From assembly GCF_001194135.2 (NCBI RefSeq), contig NC_069004.1, forward strand, positions 1,663,001-1,695,549: a DNA stretch of 32,549 nt, read 5' to 3'. Below are positions 10,882 to 32,549 of the stretch, in pieces. A program made the translations under genes and the position numbers. Under the pieces are notes generated by a model, which had not been told where the DNA came from, did not search any database, and worked only from the letters and a program-made list of their open reading frames with translations. The first letter of the stretch is position 1. Each line of letters begins with the position of its first letter. The DNA comes from Octopus bimaculoides (taxonomy: Eukaryota).

Positions 10882-10885
10882 AACA

Positions 10886-12184: not shown

Positions 12185-12568
12185 ATTCTAATTTAATCAG
12201 AAACAGTATTCACATTAGCAACGCCTGTTATGGCGTTCACAACAACGTATTACATCTTCATTGTAAGTCTCCAAAAGTCATAAAAAAGGTGATCCAGATG
12301 ATTTTTGCAACCAAGGCAGAAAGTGAACATTGCCCCAAGGTGACAAACGAAGCTAACTACAAGGAAGGCTGCTGCACCCTGAGGGACGGAGACTGCACCG
12401 TTTCAGTTATCAATGAACATGATTTTTCCCACTGCATTGGGATGCAGGAATGTTCGCATTTAAGTACGTGGATGCTAATTGGAAACAAATGCGAGCAAGG
12501 CGTCTACCCTCAATATTCAAGCTTCATGGCAATTAAGTACCTGTGCGGAGAACCGGAAGGGAAGAAAT
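12185..12568 (+). CDS. Type I membrane protein, Cys-rich SUEL/rhamnose-binding-lectin-like domain exon
   Basis: ctttcttttcag acceptor, gtgagt donor, 384 nt fully open, phase 1 to 1. SNLIRNSIHISNACYGVHNNVLHLHCKSPKVIKKVIQMIFATKAESEHCPK...EGCCTLRDGDC...HCIGMQEC...NKCEQGVYPQYSSFMAIKYLCGEPEGKK. The C-x-G-xxx-C and terminal I-x-Y-x-C pattern resembles SUEL-type lectins; the domain name comes from motif recall. Confidence 0.8.
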
Positions 12569-12624
12569 GTGAGTAGGCTTTTTTTTTCACGAGAAAATTG
12601 GTCTTTATTTATTTATTTATTTAT

Positions 12625-12725
12625 GACCGGCTTCTTTCAGTTTCCGTCGACTAAATCTGCTCACAAGGCTTTGGTTGGCCCAAGGCTATAGTAGAAGACA
12701 CTTTCCCAAGGTGCCACGCAAGGTG
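12625..12725 (-). mobile_element. SINE family B core
   Basis: ggcttctttcagtttccgtcgactaaat...aaggctttggttggcccaaggctatagtagaagacactttcccaaggtgccacg. Confidence 0.85.
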
Positions 12726-14324: not shown

Positions 14325-14455
<131 letters not shown>

Positions 14456-14897
14456 TTGACAGATGACACAAAAGAAATCACTTTAAACTTGCATAATTAT
14501 TGCGGCTTTTTTTCAATANNNNNNNNNNNNNNNNNNNNNNNNNNNNNNNNNNNNNNNNNNNNNNNNNNNNNNNNNNNNNNNNNNNNNNNNNNNNNNNNNN
14601 NNNNNNNNNNNNNNNNNNNNNNNNNNNNNNNNNNNNNNNNNNNNNNNNNNNNNNNNNNNNNNNNNNNNNNNNNNNNNNNNNNNNNNNNNNNNNNNNNNNN
14701 NNNNNNNNNNNNNNNNNNNNNNNNNNNNNNNNNNNNNNNNNNNNNNNNNNNNNNNNNNTAAAAAAAAGAAGTCGGAGAAAACTCTTCAAATGTAAACCAA
14801 GTAGAAATGTACAAAAATTTACATTTTTTAAAATCTTATTTTTGCTTCATTTTGAAAAATAAAACAATATTTCATGGTTCATTATTGTTAATATTTT

Positions 14898-15110
14898 AAG
14901 GCGGCGAGCTGGCAAATTCGTTAGCACCCTGGGGCGAAACGCTTAACGGTATTTCGTCTGTCTTTATGTTCTGAGTTCAAATTCTGCCGAGGTCAACTTT
15001 ATCTTTCGGGATCGATAAATTAAGCACCAGTTACGTACTGGGGTCGATCTAATCGATCTGGCCCCCTCATCCAAAATTTCGGGCCTTGTGCCAAGAGTAG
15101 AAAGGATTAT
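14898..15110 (+). mobile_element. SINE family A, near full length
   Basis: aaggcggcgagctggcaaattcgttagc...gagttcaaatt (B-box-like)...gtagaaaggattatt tail. Confidence 0.88.
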
Positions 15111-15763
15111 TGTATATATATTGAATTACATATATATGGGGGGGGCACCAAAATCTTTAAAATGCTTAGGGCTTGTCTGGGAGATAATCTCAAAAGCAGA
15201 GGAAGCAAGGTCGTGGAGAGAGGCTCTTACTGGTTCCTGGATATTCTTTTACTTGTTTCAGTCTTTTGACTGTGGCCATGCTGGAGCACCACCTTAAAGT
15301 GATTTAGACGAAGAAATAGACCGCAGGACTTACTCTTTGTAAGCCTGGTGCTTGATCTATCGATCTNNNNNNNNNNNNNNNNNNNNNNNNNNNNNNNNNN
15401 NNNNNNNNNNNNNNNNNNNNNNNNNNNNNNNNNNNNNNNNNNNNNNNNNNNNNNNNNNNNNNNNNNNNNNNNNNNNNNNNNNNNNNNNNNNNNNNNNNNN
15501 NNNNNNNNNNNNNNNNNNNNNNNNNNNNNNNNNNNNNNNNNNNNNNNNNNNNNNNNNNNNNNNNNNNNNNNNNNNNNNNNNNNNNNNNNNNNNNNNNNNN
15601 NNNNNNNNNNNNNNNNNNNNNNNNNNNNNNNNNNNNNNNNNNNNNNNNNNNNNNNNNNNNNNNNNNNNNNNNNNNNNNNNNNNNNNNNNNNNNNNNNNNN
15701 NNNNNNNNNNNNNNNNNNNNNNNNNNNNNNNNNNNNNNNNNNNNNNNNNNNNNNNNNNNNNNN

Positions 15764-15816
15764 CTACGTTAAGGCTACGTCAATGGTACAATTGTCTGTG
15801 GAGTGTTCAGCCACTT
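15764..15816 (+). CDS. Same gene, visible 3' end of a probable CUB-like ectodomain exon (remainder in gap 15367-15763)
   Basis: Frame YVKATSMVQLSVECSAT, phase-1 gtacat donor (weak) compatible with the next exon. Resembles the end of the CUB-like domain that follows SUEL-like domains in molluscan membrane proteins (inference). Confidence 0.5.
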
Positions 15817-15842
15817 GTACATTAATTCCAGGAGCAATTGTT

Positions 15843-16062
15843 AGGAGGCGAGTTGGCAGAAGCGTTAGCACGCCGGGCGAAATGCTTAGCGCTATTTCGT
15901 CTGCTACTACGTTCTTAGTTCAAATTCCGCCGATGAACATTTTGCTTTTTATCCTTTCGGGGTCGATAAATTAAGTACTAGTGAAAGACTGAGGTCGATC
16001 TAATCGACTGGTCCCCTCCCCAAAAATTTCGGACCTTGTGCCTGCCTAGAGTAGAAAAGAAT
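15843..16062 (+). mobile_element. SINE family A, near full length
   Basis: Colinear with 14898-15110. Confidence 0.88.
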
Positions 16063-16179
16063 TTCATGAGCAATTGTTCCGGCGATCGGATCAACTGGAA
16101 ACCGCGTCGTCGTAATCGAAGAGAGCCAATTAGGTTGATACACATAATAATTGTAAACTTTTTATTTATTTTTATACAG

Positions 16180-16227
16180 CGACAACTGAAATGACTACAG
16201 CAAAGGTAACTGCAGCAACGAACACAT
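16180..16227 (+). CDS. Same gene, Thr-rich stalk exon 1
   Basis: tttttatacag acceptor, gtaagt donor, 48 nt, phase 1 to 1; TTEMTTAKVTAATNT. Confidence 0.75.
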
Positions 16228-16522
16228 GTAAGTAATTTTAAGTTCTAAATAATTTGATGTTTTTATTTGCTCTTGAATTCGTACAACCTATTGCAGTGTA
16301 TGTTGATGGGTCTGTTTCCAGTTATTTCGTATATTAAATCATTTAAGAGGCCAACATTTCCTTTTAACGTGGGCATGGACGAGGAAATGCTGGCCTGACC
16401 GCCTAGCCAGATGGGTGGCATTCGAAAGCCACAACATTGCAAGGAAGCACATTGTAACAAGCTATGTATAACATCATCTGATAATCTGGTTGACACATAG
16501 TGATGTATATATATATATGTGT

Positions 16523-16700
16523 AGGGGGAGAATTCACAAAAAAAAGAAGACAGGTGGTGTAGACAACAAACAAATTATTAGTATAACGCTCGGGAAGTGA
16601 AAAAGTCTTTAACGTTTCGAGCCGACGCTCTTCCACAGAAAGGAACACAGAAAGAAACAAGGAGAGAAAATAAAGAATGCGTAGTGGCTAGCGATCTATC
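16523..16700 (-). mobile_element. Penelope-like terminal repeat fragment, copy 2
   Basis: Homologous to 4421-4600; also follows a TA-rich tract. Confidence 0.55.
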
Positions 16701-16739
16701 ATGGCGAATGCCGGACATACATACATATATATATATATA

Positions 16740-16892
16740 CGACAAGCTTCCACGCAGTTTCTCTCAACCTAATTTACTCACAAGAGATTGGTTGACCCTG
16801 GGTTAGAGCAGAAGACACTTGCGCCACGTGGAATTGAACCCGAAAAATCAGGTAGTAGCAAAGCGAGCTTCTTAACCTCACGGCCATACCTG
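16740..16892 (-). mobile_element. SINE family B with tRNA-like head
   Basis: Core plus rc head with gggttcaattcc B box. Confidence 0.8.
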
Positions 16893-17071
16893 CTTATGTA
16901 TATACAAAGACTCGTTTATGTAGCTTTTGTTGTTGTTGCCGTAGTTGTCGCAGTCGTGACTTATTGTCATTTTTATTAGCGAAGGAACTTCGTTTTTGAA
17001 TTTAAATTGAAATTTTATTCCATCATTTCTGTCCATTTATTTATTTATTCATTTATTTATCTTCATTGCAG

Positions 17072-17113
17072 CCCTGCGAATGTCTACGACCGAAAAATCT
17101 CTGCCAGTAACAA
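17072..17113 (+). CDS. Same gene, stalk exon 2
   Basis: cttcattgcag acceptor, gtaagt donor, 42 nt, phase 1 to 1; LRMSTTEKSLPVT. Confidence 0.75.
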
Positions 17114-17355
17114 GTAAGTAGAATGAAATTTACTTCACGGTCCCATTGCTTCAGGTTCAGTCCCACAGCGTTGCGCTTTAGGCAGGTGTCTTTTACTACA
17201 GCCCTGGGCCTTGTGATCACCAGGGAAGTCTGAGTTTCCCAGCAACGGAGTTTTGTTTCGTGGGTTCTCTTTCTTTTCCGAGTTATCTCCCATGACTTCA
17301 ACGAATGTGACATCGAAAAAACGCGTAAACGGCTCCTTTCCCCAGAAAAGGAAAG

Positions 17356-17466
17356 ATTTGGCTGTTATTTCTTGCACGCCCTGCTACTACGCAACAGGTA
17401 TTTCGGGTCCTTTATCGCAAATACCTGTTACGTGGTAGCAGGGCGTGCTAGAAACAGCAGTCAAAT
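17356..17466. repeat. 48-bp imperfect inverted repeat, 15-nt spacer
   Basis: 17356-17403 vs rc of 17419-17466, six mismatches. Confidence 0.9.
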
Positions 17467-18016
17467 ATTTGGCGGTGAGATACGTTGAATGCACTCGAAA
17501 GAAACCGATGGGAAAAAACTTTTTCACACCGAGATTACGAACGGGTCTTTTACGAAATATTTACTGTACTTTTAAAGTCATTTTCACTTCAAAATATTTT
17601 GCTCACCATAATGTGTCTAATGGAAAGGCTAGAGTTCCTTCCCTTTCAGAGTTAACTTATTTTCGGAGTATTTTCCCCTTATGCACCGTTTTGGGTATTT
17701 ATACCCCACCCCAAACCTCGAATATCTCAATAATCACTGCTACAGTTTACGTGAAACTTGTGTTATTCCGTTTGTATTCACATTTCAGGGGCACTTTACT
17801 TTCAAAGTATTTTCCCATTAGGCGCCAGTTTGGCTGTGTAACACTGCAACCAAGCAAGCAAGATTGAAGTTTCATCCGAATCCATGCAGCGGTTCTTGAG
17901 ATATCTTGTCCACGGACAAACAAACACGACTGAATACAGTATCTCCGCCTTTGCTAAGGTGGAAGTGATAAATATAATGAAATCGATGCTAAACTTGTGT
18001 TGTTTCGTTTATTTAG

Positions 18017-18145
18017 AAAACACGCCAGACAACATCGTAAAATCGGTTACGAAAACAACTAAAGGCAAAAACTATAATTCCACCAGCACCACAGAGAACA
18101 CTAACGTGGCACCGATTCGGGCAGAAAGCGAACAGCCAGCTTTAA
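18017..18145 (+). CDS. Same gene, stalk exon 3
   Basis: gtttatttag acceptor, gtaagt donor, 129 nt, phase 1 to 1; NTPDNIVKSVTKTTKGKNYNSTSTTENTNVAPIRAESEQPAL. Confidence 0.8.
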
Positions 18146-18496
18146 GTAAGTTTCATCGATTAATATTTCGCTTCGTTAACATAGAATTACTCATACGGCA
18201 TTTTAAACCTCTCACTTGCTACGTGTGTGTGTATATGTGTGTTATTTTGGTCGAGTCGGTCTCTTACTACTCTGTTATTTAATTTCAATACAGACTATGC
18301 AGGCTTATAGCCTAAAGCAGACCCAAAAGTGCCGCTCCCATAAAAGTGCCGCCCGGGCGGACCGCCTACTCCACCTCCTCGGAAAAATAATCCGGAAACC
18401 TTGTTCGGTACCGGATCGATCCTACACTCTAATCAGTTCGTGCTAGTCACGAGGCCAAACATCCCTGAAAGAATGTAAAAGATATCACCGGAGAGA

Positions 18497-18770
18497 ATGC
18501 GTGTTCTAATGGTTAAGATGTTGTGCTCTGGATCATAAGATTGTGGTTTCGATTCCTGGACCAGGTGACGCATTGTGTTCTTGAGCAAAACACTTCATTT
18601 CACGTTGCTCCAGTCCACTCCGCTGTTAATGAGTTCCAGCAATAACTGGGAAGTTAACTCTGCGATGGACTGGCGATCCATCCAGGTGGAAAGTGTTGTA
18701 ATCTCAATCAATTATAAGCCATTGAAACGTGGCTCTGGCTTAATGATTGCTGGGACTCATGGCAGACTTA
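18497..18770 (+). mobile_element. SINE family C (tRNA head, ttcttgagcaaaacacttcatttcac core, gcgatggactggcg V-domain-like block)
   Basis: A-box-like start and ggtttcgattcc B box; related reverse pieces at 27155-27260 and 31365-31515. Confidence 0.75.
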
Positions 18771-18821
18771 ACCGACGACCATACTAATATGGAAACCTTA
18801 ATACGTTTCATTTCATTTCAG

Positions 18822-18903
18822 TGTTGGGAGCTATAATTGCTATCACTTGCGGAGTTATTGGAATGTTGTTAAGTGTTCTCTGTCTCTGGATATATTGTCG
18901 CAC
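18822..18903 (+). CDS. Same gene, transmembrane exon
   Basis: tttcatttcag acceptor, gtaagt donor, 82 nt, phase 1 to 2; LGAIIAITCGVIGMLLSVLCLWIYCR, a hydrophobic run followed by basic residues. Confidence 0.85.
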
Positions 18904-19546
18904 GTAAGTTCATTCATTCGTACATATCTTCATTTATACAGTTATTCATTCCTTAGAACCGAGACCATACTAACAATTTCTGGGCGCAACCACATCGCAA
19001 TTGAAAAAGTCGTGGAAAGAGCTAGGTCGAGGAACCTATAATAAACCGTCGCCGTAACACTGCGGAAGGTGATGGACCACGTGCTACGCATGCTCACGAA
19101 GAGACCAGCGCGAGCCTCTCTCTCTCTAATGGAAGCCGCAGGTGGGGAGGGGTGGGAAACGCTGAAGACGAAGAAACTTCGTTGAAGACCAAGGAATCGG
19201 AACTGGCGGAAATGGACCTGATCTGAGATCAGGTTCTGTGACAAGACTTGCAATTGTGCTGTTGGGAGATTTCTCACCACCCGACGCTCATAAGGGTGCA
19301 GGAGGAACTAAGCTTAGCAAAAACATTGATTTGACTAGCTTAGGATTCAGTCATGCCTATCAAAAAGTTTCTGAACTGGTGAGACGATATCCTACAAACA
19401 GCATCCAAATGCCAAGTACTTTCACCTGGAAATAATCAAGCCAACGTATCGCTTGTCAAGACAGAAGTATCAGTTGAGATCGATAAATTGAACCAGCACC
19501 CATCAACAAAATTTCTGGCTTTGTGCCAATTGTACAAAAAAAAAAT

Positions 19547-19735
19547 GTGGCAGCGAGTTGGCAAAATTCTTTACAGTATTTATTCCGGTTTTCTGAGTTC
19601 AAATTCCGTCGAGGTCATCTTTGCCTTTCATCTTTTCACTGTGAATAAAATAAAGACCCAGCTAAACACTAGGGCCAATGTAGTCGAAAAACCCTTTTCT
19701 CCTAAAACTTCTGACCTTTGCCAAAATTTGAAACA
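19547..19735 (+). mobile_element. SINE family A, diverged
   Basis: ggcagcgagttggcaaaa...ctgagttcaaattccgtcgaggtcatctttgcctttcatc. Confidence 0.75.
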
Positions 19736-19829
19736 AACGAAAGACCTACATACAAATGAATTAACCGTTTTGATACGTTTTCTGTGTGTGAGTAATAACT
19801 GAACTATTTCGTTGTTTGTTATATTATAG

Positions 19830-20166
19830 TAAGAACCAGACGTCTCCAGATCCAGATACGCATAAAGTACCGACAAGGTTTTGGAATAATATCCTACCCC
19901 AGTCGTTAACGCCAAAGTCTTTCGGTAAAGGTTACAACAACTTTACAAGTTTTATGCCATCCAGCTATCCTGCATTCCCATACAAAGACGGACAACATGC
20001 GCATATATTGCGATCTACATCAGATGCCAGTCAGTCAGACCAATCAGTTTCATCTTGTGGCAACCAGTTAAGTGAACGATCTCCTCCGAATACACCAAGT
20101 AAATCCCGTTCGCCACAAGATGGCGCCCCGTTCGCTTTTACAATAGTCAATAACTTGGCTACATAA
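19830..20166 (+). CDS. Same gene, terminal exon (cytoplasmic tail)
   Basis: atattatag acceptor, phase 2 matches the TM exon (AC+T = Thr). KNQTSPDPDTHKVPTRFWNN...GAPFAFTIVNNLAT-stop, Ser/Pro-rich. Confidence 0.8.
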
Positions 20167-20195
20167 AAGCCACTACCTACAACAGCTTCATATTA

Positions 20196-20231
<36 letters not shown>

Positions 20232-20754
20232 NNNNNNNNNNNNNNNNNNNNNNNNNNNNNNNNNNNNNNNNNNNNNNNNNNNNNNNNNNNNNNNNNNNNN
20301 NNNNNNNNNNNNNNNNNNNNNNNNNNNNNNNNNNNNNNNNNNNNNNNNNNNNNNNNNNNNNNNNNNNNNNNNNNNNNNNNNNNNNNNNNNNNNNNNNNNN
20401 NNNNNNNNNNNNNNNNNNNNNNNNNNNNNNNNNNNNNNNNNNNNNNNNNNNNNNNNNNNNNNNNNNNNNNNNNNNNNNNNNNNNNNNNNNNNNNNNNNNN
20501 NNNNNNNNNNNNNNNNNNNNNNNNNNNNNNNNNNNNNNNNNNNNNNNNNNNNNNNNNNNNNNNNNNNNNNNNNNNNNNNNNNNNNNNNNNNNNNNNNNNN
20601 NNNNNNNNNNNNNNNNNNNNNNNNNNNNNNNNNNNNNNNNNNNNNNNNNNNNNNNNNNNNNNNNNNNNNNNNNNNNNNNNNNNNNNNNNNNNNNNNNNNN
20701 NNNNNNNNNNNNNNNNNNNNNNNNNNNNNNNNNNNNNNNNNNNNNNNNNNNNNN

Positions 20755-20791
<37 letters not shown>

Positions 20792-20802
20792 TATATATAT
20801 AA

Positions 20803-20846
<44 letters not shown>

Positions 20847-21794
20847 GCTTTAATATTACATCAAAAATCCTTTGTATTTAACATTGAGCGAAGGTATAGA
20901 AAGGAAAAGATACGTTTTCCAGCAACAGATTTAAATTTCGAAATCGAGAAAGAGAGAACACTATTTTTATTACAACAAAATTCTTCAATTATTTTAGCCA
21001 ATTCAGAATGGCTAAAATATTTAATGAGCTACTGCAGATAAATATTAGCTTTTTTCACTGCAAAAAAAAGTTGGTTTTCGTTGCTGCTCAATGTCCAGCC
21101 AAAACATCTTTGTATGAAGGAAAAGGATATACGTTCGTTTACAAAGAAAAAAAGACAAAACAAAAAACTCTTCATATGTCAATATGGTTTTTAAGGCAAT
21201 TTTTTTTTATATATTTGTTTTGATTATATTTTTATATTTTTTTATTAATTTGGATATTGATGATGCTAATGAGAAAGGAAACCAAAGAAAACGATTCCAT
21301 CTGGAATAAATCGATTGTCAGACTGAGATCGTGTCACAAACGAAAGTAGACAATGAGCTATTGCTGAAAACATTCGGGAATTCTATGAATATTATATATT
21401 TAACTCTTTTATAATCTTATCAAACTTAATTAGCAAGCTTCACACCTGTTTTGATAATAAAATGAACCTAATAAATGTTTTTCCATTTTTTTTCCCCTTT
21501 TGGAGTTTATTTTTTTCGCTCTGATTTAATTTTGAGTGGCAGACTTAATGCATCATCCATTGGGACAATGCAACCCCCCTGGTATGGTGGCATCTTCCAT
21601 TTTTTATTTGTTTCAGTCGTTGGAATGCGGCCATGCTGGGGCACTTCCTTGGTGGTGGTGGTGGTGGGAGTTTAGACGAACAAATTGACCCCAGTACATA
21701 TTTATTTATATAGTCACCAACCTGAATTTTTCCTACAAATATCTTAGGTAGGCAACTGGACTGGTAACAAGAGGTCAAACGGGTCAAAATATCT

Positions 21795-21995
21795 TCTTTT
21801 ATCTTTTACTTGTATCAGTCATTGGAATTGCAGCCATGCTGGAGCACTGCCTCTACTAGTTTTGTCAAACAAATCGAGCCCCAGTGCCTATGCTTTCTGT
21901 TTTTAAGTCTGGCACTTATTCCATCAGTCTCTTTAGTCAAACTGCTATGTTATGGAGATGTAAACAAACCAAGACTGGTTGTCAAGCAGTGTGGC
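21795..21995 (-). mobile_element. SINE 3' module, reverse orientation
   Basis: tcttttacttgtatcagtcattgg...gccatgctggagcac matches rc of 29290-29345. Confidence 0.75.
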
Positions 21996-22454
21996 TGGGT
22001 AACATACACACACACACACACACATATACATACATATATATATATTTCTTTTTTGAAGTGGTGAAGCACAAAGTAGATAAAGCTATAAACAACAGCATGT
22101 AAGTAATTGGGTTACACACTATTATTTATAGCTCTATCTGCTTCAAGTTTCACCATTCCAAAAGTGAATTATTTCACATTTTCTTCAAGTCTCTAAATTC
22201 TTATGATGTCAACAATACATACATGCATACATATATACATACACACACACACATACATAAAGTTGTAAATGACTGAGAAAGTTTGATGAAATTTTATTTA
22301 AAAATAACAAAAATCAAATACCACAAATTGTTTCATAACTTAAAACATGTAGATAATTTATATTATTATATTTAAAACTCTCTAATAATTATTTCTTATT
22401 ATTTTTATAAACCTCCCTTCTTATCTTAAGTACCTTTCAGTTTCTGTCTAACAA

Positions 22455-22582
22455 ATCCACTGATAAGGAATGAGTTGGCCTAGTACTTCAGTCGAAGGCA
22501 CACGCACAGGGTGACTTGCTATGGGATTGAACTCAAAACCACATAGTTGCAAAGAAAATTTCTTAACCACACAGTTATGCCT
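22455..22582 (-). mobile_element. SINE family B, diverged
   Basis: gggattgaactc (rc B box) and cttaaccacacag...atgcc head. Confidence 0.65.
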
Positions 22583-22952
22583 TGTCATTAGAGTGAATGT
22601 AAATACATATACACTTCAAAGAGAAGATTAATAATTAAAAAAAAGTTATCTTCAATCAAAGAATTAAAGAAATACAAGTTTATTTTATATTTAAATTAGA
22701 TACATAGAGAGAGAGAGGCGGGGAACAACAAATAAAAAAGAATCAAGACAGAGTACCAGGTGGGACTCACCTGGTACTGTCTTTAGATTTCTTTAATATA
22801 TTTGCTTCTCAACCGTTTCGCTAGAATCAGAGCATAATATATTCCGTGTAGTTTCTCCATTTAAAATTCTGGAATGGTGTTTGGGATTAAATCGGTATCA
22901 TTGATTATGATCTATAAAATCAATAAAATAGCAAGATCAATTCTGAAGATAT

Positions 22953-23053
22953 TTAGTCAAACCAATGTTCTCCCAAGCACTCAGTTGACCATTTTTTTCC
23001 ACAGACCCAGCACCATTCTGCTTCACATTTACAAATCATGTGGTTACAACCAC
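22953..23053 (-). CDS. PRKN: Parkin-like, terminal coding exon (RING2/Rcat)
   Basis: ttttaatag acceptor, phase 1. [33 protein letters not shown]-stop (TAA); ends in the Parkin-type HWFD. Confidence 0.93.
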
Positions 23054-23584
23054 CTATTAAAACAAAAGAGTAAAAAAAAAAACATTATAGAAAACAAAAT
23101 TTATCAGATGAATTTATTAAGCAAGTAATGTTATTTTCAGCTTAAAAATTAAGTACCAGTTACGCAAATCCACTCATAAAGCACTAATTAGCCCAAGAAG
23201 GCTATTTGCCCACAATGCTGTGCAGTGGGAAAGTTACTTTACTCAAGGGCCATGCCTGCACCAACCATTCTTAAGAGCCCTAGACATTTAGATCAGTCTT
23301 GCCAAACCGTCTGACAAATGTGCCCTTGTAAAATACCCTCTTATTCCATGTAAAAATCCACAGTAAACAAAACACAGCAGGGATCAGACAAATCACCCCT
23401 TAACTCGCCCGAAACCACAGGGGAGAAAATGCAGGCTAAAGGCAGAGGTTGTACGTAAAATGTAAAATACAGAAAACTAGAAAGTCTTCAATCACTATGA
23501 AAGACAAAGATCAAAAAGCCTATGGGGTGAGGGACAAAATAAACCCATAGAGAAATGGAAAATAATTCTCAAAGAATAACTTAC

Positions 23585-23678
23585 CACTTTTCTCAACATT
23601 GACTTCACATTTTGGACACTTCTTAGAGATTTTATGAATCAAGGTAGCTGACTGTTGTGCCAATTGGTGATCTGGATA
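23585..23678 (-). CDS. PRKN: Parkin-like, exon equivalent to PRKN exon 11 (REP and start of RING2)
   Basis: ttctgcag acceptor, gtaagt donor, 94 nt, phase 0 to 1. YPDHQLAQQSATLIHKISKKCPKCEVNVEKS vs human ...[26 protein letters not shown]. Confidence 0.92.
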
Positions 23679-24016
23679 CTGCAGAAGAATTGACAAGAAG
23701 AATTCCCTCTTTAAAATAGCATATTTTCCAATGTATTAGATGTGCCTTTTTTTATTTTTAACAGTATCAAAACATTGCCCTGTGTGTGTCTAATGTCTCA
23801 TGCAGCTGTATTACAGATGGAAGACTAAGTACCACAGGCTAAGGGGTCAGGTAAACATATGTCTGTTAGACGTGAAAAAACATTCGAGCGAGGTCGTTGT
23901 CAGTGCCACTAGACTGGCTCCTGTGCAGGTGGCACGTAAAAAACACCACTTGAGCATGGCCGTTGTCCTGTGTATGTGTGTGTGTGTGTGTATATCTCTC
24001 TCTCGCTCTCTTTCTT

Positions 24017-24066
<50 letters not shown>

Positions 24067-24080
24067 ATGGAGAAATTATA

Positions 24081-24440
24081 TTAGGTTGGCAACTAAGTTC
24101 CCGCGGTTTTTTTTTAATTTAAATTTTTTTTAAAGTTTAATAAAAAATAACAACTAATTAATCAATAATGTATTCGCCCTTGTTGTTTACAACTTTTTCC
24201 CATCGTTCAACAATATTTTCAATACCTCGTTGCTAGAAATCACCCGATTTCGACTCGAAAAAATTGATCCAACCAAGCTCTCAATTCTGCATCAGTATTG
24301 AACGAAACTCTGTGCATAGCATTTGAAAGAGATCGAAAGAGGTGGAAACCCATTGGTGCCAAATCGGGAGAGTACAGCAGGTGTGGCAGCACTTCCCAGC
24401 CATGCATTTGAATAGCTTCCTTGGTCATATTGGTTTCGCA
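24081..24440 (-). mobile_element. 5'-truncated mariner with intact 3' TIR, in the Parkin-like intron
   Basis: TKEAIQMHGWEVLPHLLYSPDLAPMGFHLFRSLSNAM...ELRAWLDQFF, then a frameshifted RGIENIVERWEKVVNNKGEYII. TA at 24079-24080 followed by TIR ttaggttggcaactaagttcccgcgg. Confidence 0.92.
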
Positions 24441-24495
24441 CTCACATAAGAAATCTGTCACAAACCTGAAATAGTTAGCAAATAAATACTCTTAC

Positions 24496-24573
24496 CAGGT
24501 CGCTTCCTTCAACTGGTTCTCGGCCACATGGTCCATTATGTGCCTCATTGGAACACTGACGGCAGAACTTGTG
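24496..24573 (-). CDS. PRKN: Parkin-like, exon equivalent to PRKN exon 10 (IBR second half)
   Basis: cctacag acceptor, gtaaga donor, 78 nt, phase 0 to 0. HKFCRQCSNEAHNGPCGREPVEGSDL vs human FAFCRECKEAYHEGEC. Confidence 0.9.
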
Positions 24574-24774
24574 CTGTAGGAAGAAAAAAAACCCAAAAAA
24601 ACATCACTAATTGTTAATTGGTAACCACCAGATTGATTAAATTATAATTATTGACATAGAAAGAGACAAATAATCAAAATATACATTGCGTGGTACCTTG
24701 GGACAAGCGCCTTCTATTTATAGCCCCAAGTTAGCAGAGTGGCAGACAGAAACTGATAGAAGCCCATTGTGTGA

Positions 24775-24811
<37 letters not shown>

Positions 24812-24865
24812 GTCATCCCATAAATAATGTTTGTTTTCAATTGCCTGAACTAAAGGTCGAATGAA

Positions 24866-24950
24866 CATACATACATACATACATACATACATACATACAT
24901 ACATACATACATACATACATACATACATACATACATACATACATACATAC
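24866..24950. repeat. (ACAT)n microsatellite
   Basis: Read directly. Confidence 0.95.
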
Positions 24951-25103
24951 GCACGCACTCACACATATACACACATCTAAAGGACTCTGATAGAGATTTC
25001 ACCCACACGGCTTTGGTCAACCTGAGAGTATGGTGGAAGACATCTTAAGCACCAAGATCACAGCCAGAACTATATTAAAACAAGGGGAGCAAAAAATACT
25101 CAC

Positions 25104-25238
25104 CTGACAGCGGTAACAGGTAATATCAGTGACATTTAGATCAGCCTCGAAACACTCTTTGCAATGAGGGTTCGGGCAGTAGACTGAATAAGTATTTTGA
25201 AGATAAGCCCTTGTTGCCTGGCTCTGGTATTCTTCATA
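25104..25238 (-). CDS. PRKN: Parkin-like, exon equivalent to PRKN exon 9 (IBR first half)
   Basis: tttacag acceptor, gtgagt donor, 135 nt, phase 0 to 0. YEEYQSQATRAYLQNTYSVYCPNPHCKECFEADLNVTDITCYRCQ; IBR Cys spacing kept. Confidence 0.9.
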
Positions 25239-25409
25239 CTGTAAAGAAACAATTAGGAATGTTAATCAAAGGACCTCTGAAAATAATTTATAAATCAAAA
25301 TAGTTATCTATGTATCATATTTAATGTAAGTACATTGCTGAAAAGTAATTTATTGCTGAGGTCATCCACAGTTAACATCTCTAGTGGAGATGCTGTGTTT
25401 AAAAGCACA

Positions 25410-25500
25410 ATATATATTGGGGGCAGGGCAAAAATATATTGGGGGCAGGGCAAAAATATATTGGGGGCAGGGCAAAAATATATTGGGGGCAGGGCAAAAA
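25410..25500 (+). repeat. 22-bp G-rich minisatellite, 4 copies (aaaaatatattgggggcagggc)
   Basis: Period of 22 read directly from positions 25417, 25439, 25461, 25483. Confidence 0.92.
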
Positions 25501-26369
25501 TCAACTCAGCAGCAACTAATGAAAATGCTAGATGTATTTCAGCCTTGTTGGGTGTTGTCAGTGGCAAATACTCACAGAGAGCCACATTGTAATAACAATT
25601 CCTTGATGATGTAAGCACCATAAACAGTGAAGTACTTAAGTAATTATAATGCAAACACAAATTAGATAAACTCTTTAAAACTCTTTTTGAAATGGAAAGA
25701 GCACACAAGGATGTTATTGGTCAAAGTAGCTTTAAAAGAGAAATATACGGCTTAGGTGGTTGGTCTAATAATTTCAAGTGGATCCACTAGGATACAGTTA
25801 AACAGCCAATGGCAGGTGGTCATGTGATCTTGAGTCTACTTCTATTCTGGCTCTTGAATGCATGTCTTAACTTTTACTTCTGGCTTTGTGAAAAACATAG
25901 GCCCAGCATTTATAACCAGCCGGCAATGACTGCACTAGAATTAAGTGTTGAAAGTTAATTATACACTTGTCAGTTGTGACTTACCACTTGGAAGTTAATT
26001 ACAGCTCTAACTTCCATGTACGTGTGATGTGTGCATGTGCACATGAATGGATGTGCATGTGGTTGCTCTGCAATCATTTGAACATGTGACATGTGGCACC
26101 CATTGCACCTGTACAGGTAACGTCAATCTGATGGAGCGAGTGAGCCTATGGCTCGATGGAGGGGAACGTGGCTGCAGCAATGTGGAGTGTAGAGAGAAAG
26201 ATGGAAGCAAACAAGACACCTTGGTCACCCACTGCATCCGTTTCCATCCCCAGCAGCACAGTTTTAATGCAATGGATGAACACCACAACATCATTGCCAG
26301 CTCAAATTCATATTTAAGATAAAAGAAAACAAAAAAAGAAAAGCATCAACAAGTCACATATATATTTAC

Positions 26370-26431
26370 CTTGACGTCTCCAAGAATTCGAAAATGGTGA
26401 GCTTCCTGGATGAAGGAGTGGTCACAGTGAG
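26370..26431 (-). CDS. PRKN: Parkin-like, exon equivalent to PRKN exon 8 (end of RING1)
   Basis: ttcttcag acceptor, gtaaat donor, 62 nt (same length as human exon 8), phase 1 to 0. HCDHSFIQEAHHFRILGDVK vs human [20 protein letters not shown]. Confidence 0.92.
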
Positions 26432-26479
26432 CTGAAGAAGGATTTGAAAGAGAATGGAATAAGATGAAGTAGCAAGTAA

Positions 26480-26590
26480 TGGTGGCGGCGGCGGCGGTGC
26501 TAATGAAGGTGGTGGTGGTGGTGGTGGTGGTGGTGGTGGTGATGTAGATAGTGGTGGGGTGTGCTGTAGGTGACGGTGGTAGTGGTGGTT
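26480..26590. repeat. (GGT)/(GGC)n tract upstream of the Parkin-like exon 8 acceptor
   Basis: Read directly; gives a spurious poly-Pro ORF. Confidence 0.9.
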
Positions 26591-26705
26591 GAGAATAACA
26601 GGAGGGGTGGTCATGACTAGAACGTCTTTGACCAGATCACAGGCCATACATGGAGGAGATTAGATGTTAATATAGATTGAAATTATTTTTTTATTTATCT
26701 ATTTA

Positions 26706-27111
26706 TATGATTGTTTCATATAGAAAGACAATAAATTCATTTTAAGAATCTGGATTGTCAAAAAGTATTCTTCAGTAGCAAAAATTAAAGAAAGGACAAA
26801 AAAACCCCCAGCTAAAAAGACATTAGAATTACTTAGGTGTGGTGTTTGTAATGTGTAACTGTTCTTAGAGTCATTTCTATTTAAAACAAGGTTAAAGGGT
26901 CTCAGTCGGGTGTTGATATATATAAAAAAATTAATAAGGGTTACGTTCTCTCTATAGATTAGTACAAACTTTACAAACACCATACCTATGTAATTCCAAT
27001 GTCTTTTTAGCTTTTTTTCACCTTTCTTTAAATTTTTGCGACTGATGAATATTTTTTGACAACCCAGATTCATAAAATGAATTTATTGTCTTTCTGTATG
27101 AAACGATCATA
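26706..27111. mobile_element. MITE-like element with about 90-bp terminal inverted repeats
   Basis: 26706-26795 is the reverse complement of 27021-27111 with about 7 substitutions and 1 indel. TA at both termini; non-coding interior. Confidence 0.75.
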
Positions 27112-27508
27112 CAGCTACATGAATAAAAAATAATTTCAATTCATGAAAACGATAAATGTCGTCCTTTCAAAGCCTAGCCAGGCTCATGGGCCTGGTTTCC
27201 CAGTTTCTATGGCATGTGAGTTCCCCCTCCCCCCAGCTGGACGGGACACCAGTCCATCGCAAATTTCAATCCATATTAACATCTAATCTACTCCATTTAT
27301 GCAAATTATGATTGAATTTGTTGAACTCTGTTTTATAAGTTAAATCATATACTTAATATACTTATATAAATTGTCATATCTAAGCTAATTTACACCTGTA
27401 AATTAAATTAAAGTATGAAGAAACAGCATTAGAAATCTTTGGAAAACTATTCTAATTTGAGCCCAAAACCACATGATTAGAAACGTCTTAATTATACAGC
27501 CATGCCTG

Positions 27509-27683
27509 NNNNNNNNNNNNNNNNNNNNNNNNNNNNNNNNNNNNNNNNNNNNNNNNNNNNNNNNNNNNNNNNNNNNNNNNNNNNNNNNNNNNNNNNNNNN
27601 NNNNNNNNNNNNNNNNNNNNNNNNNNNNNNNNNNNNNNNNNNNNNNNNNNNNNNNNNNNNNNNNNNNNNNNNNNNNNNNNNNN
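27509..27683. other. Assembly gap (175 N), candidate location of the missing RING1 exon
   Basis: N run. Other gaps: 1684-1693, 2429-2869, 3551-3935, 4378-4387, 8910-9550, 14519-14758, 15367-15763, 20232-20754, 28225-28262. Confidence 0.6.
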
Positions 27684-27809
27684 AATAGACAAGAGACTAC
27701 CCCTCCCCTGGTATCATGATATCAGCATCCTGTTTAAAATGACTAAAATTAATCCTTTTAAGACCAACCTGTCTAACACCATCCTGAGTTCTGTGATACA
27801 AACATCCGG

Positions 27810-27909
27810 TTTTAAAGTGCTCTGAATTAAAATCTTTTAAAGTGCTCTGAATTAAAATCTTTTAAAGTGCTCTGAATTAAAATCTTTTAAAATGCTTTGA
27901 ATAAAAATT
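27810..27909 (+). repeat. 25-bp minisatellite, 3 exact copies plus 1 degenerate (ttttaaagtgctctgaattaaaatc)
   Basis: Read directly. Confidence 0.9.
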
Positions 27910-28804
27910 TCATGTTAATTTATATTCCAAATGTCAGCTTAATAATGAGGAATTTATTTTGCTAAATTCTTCACCATTTTCAAAATTTACTTCATTAGAA
28001 TTTCAACATCAGCAACAGGGTATACATGTATGTATACATGTATGTATATGTGCAGATGTGTATGATTTGCTTTATGCGTGCATTTTCGTGCATATAGTTG
28101 CATGCCTAAATACGCTCGTATATACTTAGATGATAAATTTCTGGCAAGTTTTGTATGTATGTATGTATGTATGTATGCATACATATGTGGGTGGGTGTGT
28201 GCGTGTGTATCTTTGTGTTTATGTNNNNNNNNNNNNNNNNNNNNNNNNNNNNNNNNNNNNNNCCCCCCCCATTACTACTTCACAAGTGGTACTGGTTTGT
28301 TTATGGTCGCCTAACCTACAGGTTCAGCCCTGGATAATTGTCAGACTTTAAATTGTACCGGCAATGAAAAGAGTAAGGGAGACAACTCTAAAATTCAAAC
28401 ATTGGAACTTGGAGAACCTGGAAGGCAAAATACACAAGATTAGAGAGGACTTTATGATTCCAGTCAAAGTATTAATAAGACTATGGTTAAAGAATGTTTA
28501 AAGAATGGTTAAAGAAAAAACATTGTTGTATCCACAGCTACACCAGCAGCATAACTGGGCATGCAGTCTGGGCTCAGCAGCCCTGAGGCTATGCTGGGGC
28601 ACCTGCAAGGGAGACAAACAAGGAAAGGAAGAATGCCAAGGATAAACTTCGACAGACTGTCAGTGCTTGCGAAGCGACCAAGGGTAAGGGTGCCGACCCC
28701 CAAATGTAAATTGGGTCAGAAGAGAAAGCAGGGCCTCCCAACACTATACAACCTTGAAAGGTGGTCAAACAAAGGGAGAGACAATATCAAACTTAAATTC
28801 CTAG

Positions 28805-28922
28805 ATATGGCTCTGTGGTAAGAAGTCTGCTTCCCAACCACATGGTTCCAGGTCCAGTCCCACTGTGTAGTACCTTGGCCGAGTGTCTTCTAGTATAGCC
28901 TCAGGCCAACCAAAGCCTTGTG
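28805..28922 (+). mobile_element. SINE family B head and core
   Basis: tggctctgtggtaagaag (A box)...ggttccaggtccagtccc...gagtgtcttctagtatagcctcaggccaaccaaagccttgtga. Confidence 0.85.
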
Positions 28923-29084
28923 ATTTTTTACATTTTGCATTAATGCAGATATGTAAGTAATTCATTATTAAATATAATAATATATATTATTTACATGTTT
29001 TTAAGCTATGAAACAATTTGTCATGATATTGAAATTTTCTTCTAGCTGAATAAAATTTCCTCAAAGTAATTCTCTGTCATTTAT

Positions 29085-29085
<1 letters not shown>

Positions 29086-29121
<36 letters not shown>

Positions 29122-29348
29122 GCGCGCGCGCATTTATGTGTGCCTTTGTGCCTGTGTTTGCACCCCCTCCGGTGTTGACAACCGGTGTTGGTGTGTTTAC
29201 ATCCCCGTAACTGAGTGGTTCAGCAATACAATAAGTATCAGGATAAAAAAAAGAATAAGGAGGTCAATTTCTTTGACTAGAACCCTTCAAGACAGTGCCC
29301 CAGCATGGCCACAGTCAAATGACTGAAATAAGTAAAAGAATTAAAAGA
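29086..29348 (+). mobile_element. SINE 3' module (TG tract, then ...ccccagcatggccacagtcaaatgactgaaa...aaaagaa)
   Basis: The same module recurs in reverse at about 15243-15366, 21595-21700 and 21795-21995. Confidence 0.75.
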
Positions 29349-29508
29349 ACAGGTTATTAAGGGTTGCAAAGACACAAAAGCTAAGGGTTTCAACCCCTGA
29401 CAGTTAATTGGCTCAGAAGTTTAAGGCCTCTAAACTCTTAGGGGACAGGAATATTCATTCATCCATTCATTCAATAAGACAACAAAATTAGAGAATGAAC
29501 CAACTTAC

Positions 29509-29615
29509 AAGTCTCCTTCGCAGGTTATGCAGGAATAATGTTGAGAATTATTAAAGATGTGTTTCAATAAAACTGAATTTTTCTTTGGATGTTTACGGCA
29601 GTAAAATTCATATTT
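29509..29615 (-). CDS. PRKN: Parkin-like RBR E3 ligase, exon equivalent to human PRKN exon 6 (end of RING0, start of RING1)
   Basis: ttctag acceptor, gtaagt donor, 107 nt, phase 0 to 2. Translates KYEFYCRKHPKKNSVLLKHIFNNSQHYSCITCEGD, aligning with human EFFFKCGAH...ITCITCTDVR; CITC retained. Confidence 0.85.
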
Positions 29616-29652
29616 CTAGAAAAAAAGATAAAAGAAAATCCTATATATATAT

Positions 29653-29750
29653 ATCTATATATATAAAACTGAGAATGTGTGTCTGTCTGTATGTGTGAAT
29701 CCCTAAAACTCGAGAACTACCCAACCGATTTCATTCAGATTTTACTCGTT
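29653..29750 (+). mobile_element. Helitron-like 5' terminus fragment
   Basis: a|tctatatatataaaactgagaatgtgtgtctgtctg...ctcgagaactacccaaccgatttcattcagatttt matches the layout of non-autonomous Helitron 5' ends. No 3' CTRR end found. Confidence 0.45.
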
Positions 29751-30312
29751 GTAATGTGATATAATATTGTTTCACTTTTATTCTTTCACTTTTAATTCTA
29801 ATCTGATAACACACTAAGATCATCTTATTTTACACATTTACCGTTCAATTACCAGTTAATAATTATCACAGCAGCTGCAAGATTGCAAGCTATTTACAGT
29901 TACATATTAACCCTTAATTTAACATTTAATACATATGCTTAATCTATATATATTAAGAAATTTATCTATAATAATTATTGTGGCATTTACCGTTAAATTA
30001 GCAGTTCATACATGTGCTTCTATTTGGTTCATTTGCTTATATTTGATTCATTTACACTACATACAGAAATAAAAACATACAACTGCTTACAAAAATGGAG
30101 ATCAATGTATAATAGTATCACACCCCACGAGTGTCAACATATAATTTTTTTTCGTTTCCATTAAAATAATATAACCTTTTAGAGAGATAATCTTTCTATA
30201 CTCAAATAGAGTACAAGACATTTTATACCATGATAATGACAACGTCACACTTTGTATATGTGTGTGTATGTGTCTGTCAGTGTATGAGTGAGTGTATGAG
30301 CGTGCATGTGTC

Positions 30313-30362
<50 letters not shown>

Positions 30363-30394
30363 TCCACATTCAATGACATCGCATTTTGTATATG

Positions 30395-30672
30395 AGTGTC
30401 TATGTGTCTATGGCATGTAAAAAGCACCATTTTGAGTGTGGCCAATGCCAGTACCGCCTGACTTGCCTTTGTGCTGGTGGCATGTAAAAGCACCGACTAC
30501 ACTCTCGGAGTGGTTGTCGTTAGGAAGGGGATCCAGCTGCAGAAACTTTGCCAGATCAGCTGGGAGCCTGGTGCAGCCTTCTGGCTCGCCAGTTCCATGT
30601 CAAACCGTCCAACCCATGCCAGCATGGAAAACGGACGTTAAACGATGATGATGATGATGATGATGATGATGA
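30395..30672 (+). mobile_element. SINE family D 3' half with (GAT)n tail
   Basis: gccagtaccgcctgac...tgtaaaagcacc...gttaggaagggg...aacccatgccagcatggaaaacggacgttaaacgatgatgat; a related reverse piece lies at 23865-23970. Confidence 0.8.
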
Positions 30673-30809
30673 CTATATCGGTCAATGCATGGATTTATTA
30701 GATAAAATAAATGCAACTGCATATGAGTAGAACAAAGATTGTCAACAATTTTTTTTAAGTCAATTTTTTAAAAATATATTTGCTTTCATTGAGGTTGTAT
30801 TTATTTAAG

Positions 30810-31265
30810 AACCGGTTCGGCAAAATTCAAAGAGCAGTTACCTTTGTTGATAACAAAGGGATTCTCCCTCAGAGTGGAAGCCAGATTGTATGACGCTTGT
30901 GTATGGACAGCTATGTTACGTGGCAGTGAAATATGGGCAGTGACTGCAGAAGACATGCAAAGGACGTGCAACGTCAAGGTGCATGTACGATGAAGTGTAA
31001 ATGTTTGAAGAGAAAAATTGTGTCTCTGAGGCATCGGATGTTGTGTGCGAGAGAGATGACTGCACTGGTATGATGCATATAGGTGAGGACAGCTGCATAA
31101 GAAAGTGCCAATCTTTAAATGTGACAGGAGCCTCTGGAAGAGGAAGATCCAGGAAGAGGTGTGGGACAAAGTGGTGAGAAACGATCTTCAGATGTTGACC
31201 CTTACAGAAGAGATGACAAAGGATTGAGACAAAGAACAATTTCATCTGCATGGGAAAACTTGTCC
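30810..31265 (+). mobile_element. RTE-clade LINE 3' fragment
   Basis: KFKEQLPLLITKGFSLRVEARLYDACVWTAMLRGSEIWA...GASGRGRSRKR(W)DKVVRNDL across frameshifts. Confidence 0.85.
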
Positions 31266-31364
31266 CCAGCTAGGCAAAATCGAGGCTATAAAGACATGTC
31301 CTTTATATCCATGAACCCCTGTCACCCTGCATGTAATTTTCCCCCACCCCCGCACCCCAACAAA

Positions 31365-31512
31365 CCTCCTTCAACAGGTGCCACATGTCAGATGTCAAAA
31401 TGATTGCAGAGCAACATGAAAGAAAATGCTTTGCTCAAGATTCAATGCCACGCCCGGTCTGAGAATCGAACACACGATCTCATAATCATGAGTGCAAATC
31501 CTAACCACTAAA

Positions 31513-31515
<3 letters not shown>
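31365..31515 (-). mobile_element. SINE family C fragment
   Basis: gctttgctcaaga...gagaatcgaac...taaccactaa is the rc of the family C head and core. Confidence 0.7.
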
Positions 31516-31554
<39 letters not shown>

Positions 31555-32154
31555 ATGAATGACCAATGAACAGGAGTTGCATAATAACATTAATAAGTTT
31601 ACATCTGTTTCTGCTATAAGAAGCAGTGCAGTCAGAGCTGAGTGCATGTGTATTCGTGGATTCTGTACTCTCATGATGCTTCATTCTGAAACGTAGAGTT
31701 TCAACATCTGGTTATTAGCATCACTATGCCAAGACAAAAACCTTAAAATACATCTATCTCTATCGTTCTATCTATTTTTTTTTTTCTTTATACTTACTCG
31801 CCACAAAAACCACACACACTTCTGTATCAAGTGCTTTAGATTACATCTTTCTTCTTGGCCATCATTTATTTATTTATCCTTCAAGTCTATCTATTTATCT
31901 AACTTTCAATATGTATTCATTCTAATAACTTTCTTGGCCACTCCTGCAAATGACATAAACTTCTCAGAAGCCTTACCCTACTCAATCACAATATAGAACA
32001 CACTCTAACCATCCCAGAAACACAAGAATAAGCCATTAAGACAGAAGCAAAACTGGTTTTGTCACTGTTGTGTATTTACGTCATCAAAAAATATGTCTTT
32101 CCTTCCAAATATTCTCAGTATCTTCTTTCAGTTTCCAACAACCAAATCCACTTA

Positions 32155-32245
32155 CAAGGCCTTGGACAGCCTGGAGTTTTAGTAGAAGACACTTGCCCAA
32201 GGTACCACACAACAGAACTGAACCCAGAGCCTCATGACTACACAT
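32155..32245 (-). mobile_element. SINE family B fragment
   Basis: tagtagaagacacttgcccaaggtaccacac...gaactgaaccc. Confidence 0.75.
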
Positions 32246-32549
32246 TGTCATCATTTAATATTCATGTCCATATAGTTACAGAATATAACAGGAAAAGCAC
32301 AAAAGACTGGAAATTTATTCCTGGTTTATTAGGTACCGGGGTTTCAAATACGATGACACAACTTTGATAAGAACAGAATGATGTTGAATTCCTCTCTCTA
32401 TGTAGCATTTTAATCAATCAACTATGGGAGCAATTAGATTGTACATAAGTTTGCATTGCAGCATTTTGAGGAATGCTGTCCTGCTTGAAACATATATACC
32501 CGATAACTCATGAATATATCTTCGCTTTTTCGAGATTTTCCTATATATA

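Follow-up and report, generated by a model that had tools for sequence, protein, structure and literature searches.

The stretch of DNA analysed here, called the window below, comprises 32,549 nucleotides of the genome of Octopus bimaculoides (positions 1,663,001 to 1,695,549 of contig NC_069004.1, assembly GCF_001194135.2) and contains six minus-strand open exons, spanning 29615-22953, of a gene for Parkin, an E3 ubiquitin ligase of the RING-between-RING (RBR) type that is concerned with damaged mitochondria. Each exon is preceded by a polypyrimidine tract and an AG acceptor, five of the six are followed by a GT donor, and the last one ends at the stop codon TAA (Table 1). An earlier note on this DNA, made from the sequence alone, had described six minus-strand exons with canonical splice sites and open frames, and all of them are confirmed; it had also called the gene hidden from the track of open reading frames (ORFs), which is true only as an effect of short eukaryotic exons. 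RefSeq has it under the names parkin and parkin-like. It is the Parkin ortholog of octopus, known by name in that database, and we consider it highly probable that the window carries the 3' half of the O. bimaculoides PRKN ortholog, that the gene is present in a single copy, as in every search made, and that exon 7 is absent only through an assembly gap.

Exon structure of the gene

The exon boundaries fall on human residues 207, 244/245, 290/291, 311, 361, ~389 and 428/429, and the exon lengths modulo 3 (2, 2, 0, 0 and 1, followed by the stop) are the same as in human exons 6 and 8-12. The coding lengths of human exons 6-12 are 116, 137 (exon 7), 62, 150, 84, 118 and 113 nt, and the human coding exons total 1398 nt, or 466 codons. 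The same intron positions were recovered independently in a limpet, a coral and O. vulgaris (see below), and the correspondence of borders and phases with human PRKN exons pointed out in the earlier note is borne out. The exon-11 homolog is shorter than its human counterpart (94 against 118 nt).

Human Parkin, used as a tblastn query, matched five of the six exons, with no further credible match anywhere in the 32.5 kb, and the exon-10 homolog, missed by the human query, was matched by O. vulgaris Parkin. Alignment also upholds the earlier observation on the conserved residues: the window exons encode all eight IBR ligands, all RING2 ligands, the C431, H433 and E444 equivalents and an HWFD terminus. 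As regards RING1, the ligands C238, C241 and C293 are encoded in the window, while the other five belong to exon 7 and are present in the orthologs from O. vulgaris and O. sinensis. In Pfam, the spliced peptide of exons 8-12 matches IBR, IBR_1 and IBR_2 together with the tail of the Parkin RING1 model zf-RING_14. A search for Ubl and RING0 exons in the remaining 5' part of the window (29616-32549) found none, and RING0 lies outside the window except for its last strand in exon 6.

Table 1. Exons of the Parkin gene, its partial 5' intron and the assembly gaps between exons 6 and 8 (window coordinates)
Feature	Position	Strand	Length (nt)	Content
Intron 5' of exon-6 homolog, its 3' part	29616..32549	-		Exons for Ubl and RING0 are outside the window, across a 2-kb gap of the same chromosome
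Exon-6 homolog	29509..29615	-	107	Last part of RING0 and beginning of RING1 (KYEFYCRKHP...SCITCEGD-L); begins in phase 0, ends 2 nt into a codon
38-N assembly gap	28225..28262	.	38	Intronic (exons 6-7), no exon expected; both flanks align with O. sinensis intron sequence far upstream of exon 7
175-N assembly gap	27509..27683	.	175	Predicted to hide exon 7 (RING1 core, ~134 nt; C253/H257/C260/C263/C289)
Exon-8 homolog	26370..26431	-	62	Length as human exon 8; peptide (A)HCDHSFIQEAHHFRILGDVK; C293, H302 and R305 equivalents
Exon-9 homolog	25104..25238	-	135	First half of IBR; C332, C337, C352, C360 kept
Exon-10 homolog	24496..24573	-	78	Second half of IBR; C365, C368, H373, C377
Exon-11 homolog	23585..23678	-	94	Shortened REP linker without W403 equivalent, then start of RING2 with C418, C421
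Exon-12 homolog (last)	22953..23053	-	101	Catalytic C431, H433, E444 and remaining RING2 ligands (GGC-N-H...E-W-C-W...HWFD); TAA at 22955-22953

Exon 7 and the assembly gaps

Direct splicing of exon 6 to exon 8 shifts the frame (2 + 2 nt), so that an intervening exon with a length of 2 modulo 3 is required. Neither a translation of the interval in three frames nor tblastn with the human and O. vulgaris proteins revealed exon 7 between these two exons, and it is absent from the readable sequence. On one side of the 175-N gap, window positions 27833-27689 match the O. sinensis locus L003 at ~5470-5614, and on the other side positions 27508-27457 match it at ~5890-5941; these two blocks abut the edges of the gap, lie ~275 nt apart in O. 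sinensis, and enclose the O. sinensis exon 7 (L003 5693-5824), whose RING1 core in the sister species reads NPILIYPCEKSHVMCLDCFKIYCEQYLLERKFRLTDLCYSIRCP. Because the flanks of the gap are collinear with both sides of the O. sinensis exon, exon 7 of O. bimaculoides would lie within the 175-N gap, its presence being predicted from the sister species. The 38-N gap corresponds to an intronic stretch of ~460 nt in O. sinensis, i.e. slightly more is missing than 38 N implies. Both gaps are also found in chromosome CM046624.1 (GCA_001194135.2), which is 100% identical to the window.

In O. sinensis, the intron separating exons 6 and 7 also carries ~1.0 kb and ~1.3 kb without a counterpart in O. bimaculoides, at 28427/28428 and 27990/27991. 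The window sequence is continuous at these points, and the differences are interspecies indels, not assembly gaps; they account for the distance of only 3.1 kb from exon 6 to exon 8 here, against 6.2-6.8 kb in the sister species. Altogether the window contains ten N runs (10 to 641 nt) and stops at a 2-kb gap of a chromosome-scale assembly, so gene models in this region are likely to be fragmented.

In RefSeq, the gene is indeed represented by two half models. XP_014779687.1 ("E3 ubiquitin-protein ligase parkin", 204 aa, carried by positions 10001-23753 of the locus L004) comprises the Ubl-like domain, RING0 and exon 6, and ends with ...CEGDL by reading through the exon-6 donor (GAC TTG TAA) to a TAA at 29507-29505. 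XP_014779677.1 ("parkin-like", 183 aa) is identical to the translation of exons 8-12, with an artificial N-terminus made from intron sequence. Its false start consists of an invented mini-exon, ATGGTGTTAGACAG followed by gt (~27782-27769), after which intron is read into exon 8, MVLDSTAAAATITCYFILFHSLSNPSSA... (~26512-26432). Part of this false N-terminus was supplied by an imperfect (GGT)n run at 26508-26589, just upstream of exon 8, which on the minus strand reads as poly-Pro/-His/-Thr. The model was split, and the ends of both proteins acquired these artefacts, because exon 7 lies in the gap. The two O. bimaculoides "parkin" entries are halves of one gene, an artefact of the unfilled gap, and should be merged once exon 7 has been sequenced.

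The O. sinensis locus is likewise split across assemblies (XP_029656806.2 and XP_036368994.1). The gene of O. vulgaris is intact and encodes a protein of 422 aa (CAI9739973.1, "parkin isoform X1") with Ubl, RING0, RING1, IBR and RING2 in one locus of 36 kb; the human PRKN gene, for comparison, spans ~1.4 Mb. The second coding exon of the O. vulgaris gene occurs twice, ~4 kb apart (L002 16388-16510 and 20352-20474, from OX597837.1), on the two sides of a 100-N gap (L002 17529-17628), and there are two coding-sequence entries, CAI9739973.1 and CAI9739974.1, with an identical product of 422 aa. The repeated exon probably arose in the assembly and is not a true duplication.

Membership in the Parkin family

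The assignment of the exons to the true Parkin lineage rather than to a generic RBR ligase, proposed in the earlier note, is strongly supported. In a phmmer search of the PDB, the peptide of exons 8-12 matches Parkin with an E-value of 2.5e-27 (99 bits), whereas the best non-Parkin RBR, ARIH2, reaches 5e-14 (56 bits). The Ariadne proteins ARIH1 and ARIH2 share the RING1-IBR-RING2 core and the catalytic cysteine, but they have neither RING0 nor Ubl. The Parkin-specific RING0 model of Pfam (zf-RING_12, cut-off 25) gives 51.4 bits for XP_014779687.1 and 50.5 bits for the O. vulgaris protein, and the latter also matches zf-RING_14 (90 bits) and the IBR models. Every zinc ligand of RING0, RING1, IBR and RING2 is kept in octopus Parkin, as are the equivalents of C431, H433, E444, S65, H302, R305 and Y312. 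Membership in the Parkin orthology group is well supported.

A structural model of octopus Parkin was built with AlphaFold2 on an alignment of 44 sequences. Its mean predicted local distance difference test (pLDDT) score is 82, and residues 30-105, corresponding to the Ubl, exceed 90 and exhibit a beta-grasp pattern. In a Foldseek comparison of the model with the PDB the top 32 matches are all Parkin (1.7e-32 to 5e-21), and the first non-Parkin structure is ARIH1, with 3e-9. The RING0-RING1-IBR part superposes on Parkin with a template-modelling score (TM) of 0.87-0.91 and a root-mean-square deviation (rmsd) of 1.7-2.6 A. The predicted TM of the model is 0.53, and the whole-chain rmsd to crystal structures is 19-28 A; hence the arrangement of the domains is too uncertain for a decision between the autoinhibited and the open state.

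The gene structure agrees with the protein comparisons. Exon structures were mapped exactly in O. vulgaris as well as in a limpet (Patella caerulea) and a coral (Orbicella faveolata), and all three have ten coding introns with the phases 0, 1, 0, 0, 2, 1, 0, 0, 0 and 1, the same as in the human gene. The introns fall after human residue 57, in a variable linker, and after residues 178, 206, 244, 290, 311, 361, ~389 and 428, i.e. they correspond to human introns 2-11; eight of them lie on identical residues and two in linkers that cannot be aligned. The 10 kb upstream of exon 1 are free of gene calls in both O. vulgaris (L002) and O. bimaculoides (L004), although a query with PACRG itself was not run; head-to-head pairing with PACRG is not a defining feature of Parkin.

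Copy number and phylogenetic position

O. vulgaris Parkin was compared exhaustively, by phmmer, with 1.84 billion cluster representatives (50% identity, without names). The high-identity matches were only fragments of the same octopus gene; they were followed by the transcript-derived Logan protein P0006 (47%) and then by gastropod, coral, sponge, annelid and vertebrate Parkins (34-39%), and all the named matches among the best ones were Parkin. No second octopus Parkin-like protein was found among these representatives. A word-indexed search with the window peptide (one match) and a profile search seeded with five gastropods (61 matches, several of its own queries missed) did not reveal a second octopus Parkin either, but both were visibly incomplete, and their silence is weak evidence alone; in the profile search the octopus matches were only N-terminal halves of this gene. 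A search seeded with the decapodiform protein returned only decapodiform clusters and no octopus protein, and ten divergent representatives checked by name were from a jellyfish, a tardigrade and nematodes or were nameless, with no named cephalopod among them. All the octopus Parkin-like proteins that were found trace to this locus or to its orthologs, the O. sinensis halves and the full-length protein of O. vulgaris. Nothing relevant to Parkin in cephalopods emerged from a literature search.

P0224, a relative of P0006 with 70% identity, is encoded on intron-free contigs of run SRR20545814 and others; this run is a transcriptome of the cuttlefish Sepia esculenta (PMC9538352). An RBR tree had been suggested as a check in the earlier note, and a Parkin-only distance tree was built from 298 RING0-RING2 columns. 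In this tree the sequences of octopus, of Sepia esculenta and of a second, decapodiform-like transcript (P0006) form a clade with 93% bootstrap support, nested among molluscs, and a long-branch nematode is attracted next to it. The octopus and decapodiform Parkins share W183R, the absence of K151 and K211, two extra residues in RING0 and the deletion of three residues where RING1 begins, none of which occurs in the other Parkins compared. A cephalopod clade inside the molluscs is the placement expected of an ortholog, and the tree agrees with the species tree. The decapodiform proteins also share GGCNH and the C-x2-C of the IBR with octopus, but they are only 45-46% identical to it and the octopus branch is longer. 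In Sepia Parkin, W403 and K161 are retained, RING2 has the C-x2-C of molluscs, and the C-terminus reads HWLD. A neighbour-joining tree of RING1-RING2 with non-Parkin RBR outgroups was dominated by long-branch attraction (support of 58% for octopus plus decapodiforms and 9.5% for the Parkin split) and was not used for the placement.

Human-type signatures in Parkin sequences

The earlier note had regarded several Parkin signatures as lost, namely the GGNGL insert of the IBR, the PQPQ loop of RING2 and the GGCMH around the catalytic cysteine. The residues are as it described them (IBR, C-x2-C; RING2, C-x-C; catalytic site, GGCNH), but comparison with other Parkins, 101 Parkin-type RING2 sequences among them, shows that GGNGL, PQPQ and GGCMH are not general Parkin traits. 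The spacing between C436 and C441 is two residues in 53 of the 101 sequences, including every mollusc other than octopus, and four residues in 41 (vertebrates, echinoderms, many arthropods and some sponges); a single residue is found in seven, of which three are from Octopus, one is from Sycon (a sponge) and three are from elsewhere. Among the 101 sequences, 23 read GGCNH, those of cnidarians and Sepia included. C352-x2-C360 is found in most invertebrates, while long inserts between these cysteines occur in human, zebrafish, amphioxus and a tick, mainly in deuterostomes, and GGNGL itself was seen only in vertebrates.

Two of the three differences are therefore an effect of using the human protein as the reference, and the third is a one-residue deletion relative to other molluscs. 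Human-specific loops such as GGNGL and PQPQ are unfit as signatures of the family. The Parkins of other molluscs (Patella, Haliotis, Mytilus and Potamilus) have 11 coding exons with identical intron phases, as shown for Patella; they lack GGNGL, have C-x2-C in RING2, one residue more than octopus, and keep W403, K151, K161, K211 and W183. They are 50-60% identical to each other and 34-42% to octopus.

Divergence, selection and regulatory residues

Identity between phyla over RING0-RING2 amounts to 46-59% among other Parkins, 39-48% for decapodiform and 34-42% for octopus Parkins, and in the Parkin-only tree the octopus terminal branch (0.56) is ~1.6 times as long as the decapodiform one. When the O. 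bimaculoides gene is compared with that of either O. sinensis or O. vulgaris, the ratio of nonsynonymous to synonymous substitution rates (dN/dS) is 0.20-0.21 at a dS of ~0.23, and all six window exons keep their length and splice sites (AG/GT) in both species. Octopus Parkin is thus under purifying selection. Cephalopod Parkin, and that of octopus especially, combines faster evolution than in other animals with purifying selection, and has altered residues that are central to textbook accounts of Parkin activation.

Human Parkin (O60260; PDB 5c1z, 4k95 and 6glc) has the same domain order as the octopus protein (Ubl-RING0-RING1-IBR-REP region-RING2), the same zinc ligands, the same C431/H433/E444, HWFD tail and equivalents of S65, H302, R305 and Y312, and the same intron residues and phases, with ~38% identity over RING0-RING2. 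It differs from octopus in having GGNGL, C-PQPQ-C in place of C-x-C and GGCMH in place of GGCNH, in a REP region longer by 6-8 residues and containing W403, and in the residues replaced in octopus by K151Y, K161Q, K211Y and W183R. The short REP region is specific to octopus, and the position of W403 is occupied by L or a gap in all three Octopus species; Sepia retains the tryptophan, as do 11 of 12 Parkins from outside the cephalopods. G284 is replaced by C in octopus, and R163 is kept. The changes at K151, K211 and W183 probably go back to the cephalopod ancestor.

These replacements concern sites of known regulatory importance. The residues K161, R163 and K211 reportedly take up phospho-Ubl, and the corresponding pocket on RING0 consists of Q161, R163 and Y211 in octopus, so that two of its three basic residues are lost. 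The sulfate sites named in PMC4609182 are consistent with a phospho-Ubl pocket at this place, as are the titles of the PDB entries listed. In the phospho-ubiquitin pocket H302, R305 and Y312 are kept and K151 is replaced by Y; H302 and R305 are required for the binding of phospho-ubiquitin (PMC4609182). A serine equivalent to Ser65 is present in the octopus Ubl according to the alignment. In rat and human Parkin, the W403A substitution loosens REP and raises E2 binding (PMC4609182), and the general model of Parkin autoinhibition has been summarised elsewhere (PMC7458406).

Predicted function

By analogy with characterized members of the family, the octopus protein would act as a Parkin-type RBR E3 ubiquitin ligase, in which RING1 binds the ubiquitin-charged E2 and ubiquitin is passed by transthiolation to the RING2 cysteine (the C431 equivalent, in GGC-N-H, encoded by the last exon), aided by the equivalents of H433 and E444. 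From this cysteine ubiquitin would then move to lysines of the substrate. The activity would be controlled by the Ubl (the Ser65 equivalent), by RING0 and by phospho-ubiquitin binding at H302/R305, with PINK1 relieving the autoinhibition. The present analysis bears directly on sequence, fold, domain content, gene structure, orthology and purifying selection, while catalysis and PINK1 dependence are expected for octopus Parkin from its membership in the family.

The regulation may be somewhat different in octopus. It is conceivable, although we are inclined to doubt it, that autoinhibition has been rewired in octopods, with Parkin, deprived of K151, K161, K211 and the REP tryptophan that normally blocks the E2 site, either held less tightly or switched on by PINK1 and phospho-ubiquitin with no need for phospho-Ubl to dock on RING0 as usual. 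If this were true, octopod Parkin would represent a natural experiment on residues implicated in Parkinson's disease (K161N and K211N in humans). For a Parkin biochemist the interest would be limited, perhaps one experiment and no new kind of system.

Alternative explanations

To the earlier note, the divergence suggested a fast-evolving second Parkin paralog beside a conventional Parkin. The low identity to other phyla, the long terminal branch and the existence of two RefSeq "parkin" proteins could all be read in this way, but the two proteins are adjacent halves of one gene, and only this locus is found in O. vulgaris and O. sinensis. The nearest relatives are the decapodiform Parkins, which share W183R, the loss of K151 and K211 and the indels, in a tree that follows the species tree, and neither the decapodiform-seeded search nor the ten representatives checked by name yielded a second octopus protein. 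Moreover, equally or more divergent single-copy Parkins exist in nematodes and tardigrades (Panagrellus, Haemonchus, Hypsibius), where, in unrelated lineages, a lone ortholog can drift to 30-36% identity with other phyla. The suggested duplicate is thus not borne out, since all the octopus proteins found map to one locus and octopus groups with cuttlefish, and we regard it as very improbable. The same low probability is assigned to the possibility that the O. bimaculoides gene is a decaying or truncated pseudogene from which exon 7 has truly been deleted. The absence of exon 7 from the readable sequence, the frameshift at an exon 6-8 join and the merely partial RefSeq models would agree with such a loss; the missing part, however, coincides with an N run whose flanks are collinear around the O. 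sinensis exon 7, and the six exons have intact frames, lengths, splice sites and zinc ligands, with a dN/dS of 0.20 at a dS of 0.23, a constraint that a pseudogene would not be expected to show. Mere resemblance to Parkin in a ligase of another RBR subfamily (Ariadne, RNF14/19/144 or similar) is the least credible explanation, with next to no chance of being correct. The outgroup tree of RING1-RING2 did pull the cephalopod sequences towards non-Parkin proteins, but it suffered from long-branch attraction and had low support, whereas RING0 is present, the margin over ARIH2 is 43 bits, the Foldseek E-values (1.7e-32 against 3e-9) differ by 23 orders, and all ten Parkin introns are shared.

Several observations weigh against a single-copy Parkin ortholog interrupted by a gap. 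The Pfam ubiquitin model gives only 19.7 bits for the Ubl, below its cut-off of 25.4; exon 7 of O. bimaculoides itself is unseen; and the REP tryptophan as well as K151, K161 and K211 are absent, so that regulation may be non-canonical. The evidence for a single copy comes from protein collections, one searched exhaustively and two by word index. Nevertheless, we favour the single PRKN ortholog, the apparent oddities of which arise from the assembly gap, the split gene models and a comparison centred on the human protein.

Other elements in the window

The intron between the exon-10 and exon-11 homologs contains, on the minus strand at ~24470-24160, a remnant of the C-terminus of a mariner (Mos1-like) transposase with the YSPDLAP motif, an ...ERWEKVV tail and one frameshift. 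It has no match in Pfam, but in the PDB it matches Mos1 transposase with 1.7e-21 and SETMAR with 1.6e-14. The introns are otherwise full of simple and short tandem repeats, three of which lie at 25412-25501, 27810-27908 and 24865-24950; they include a 22-nt unit repeated four times, a 25-nt unit repeated four times and (ACAT)21. Downstream of Parkin, a convergent gene on the plus strand ends at 20166, ~2.8 kb from the Parkin stop. Its serine/proline-rich last exon, the ORF 19816-20166, has no match in Pfam, and no Pfam family is assigned to the product as a whole, which gene calls put at 360 aa in O. bimaculoides and at 304 aa in both O. vulgaris and O. sinensis.

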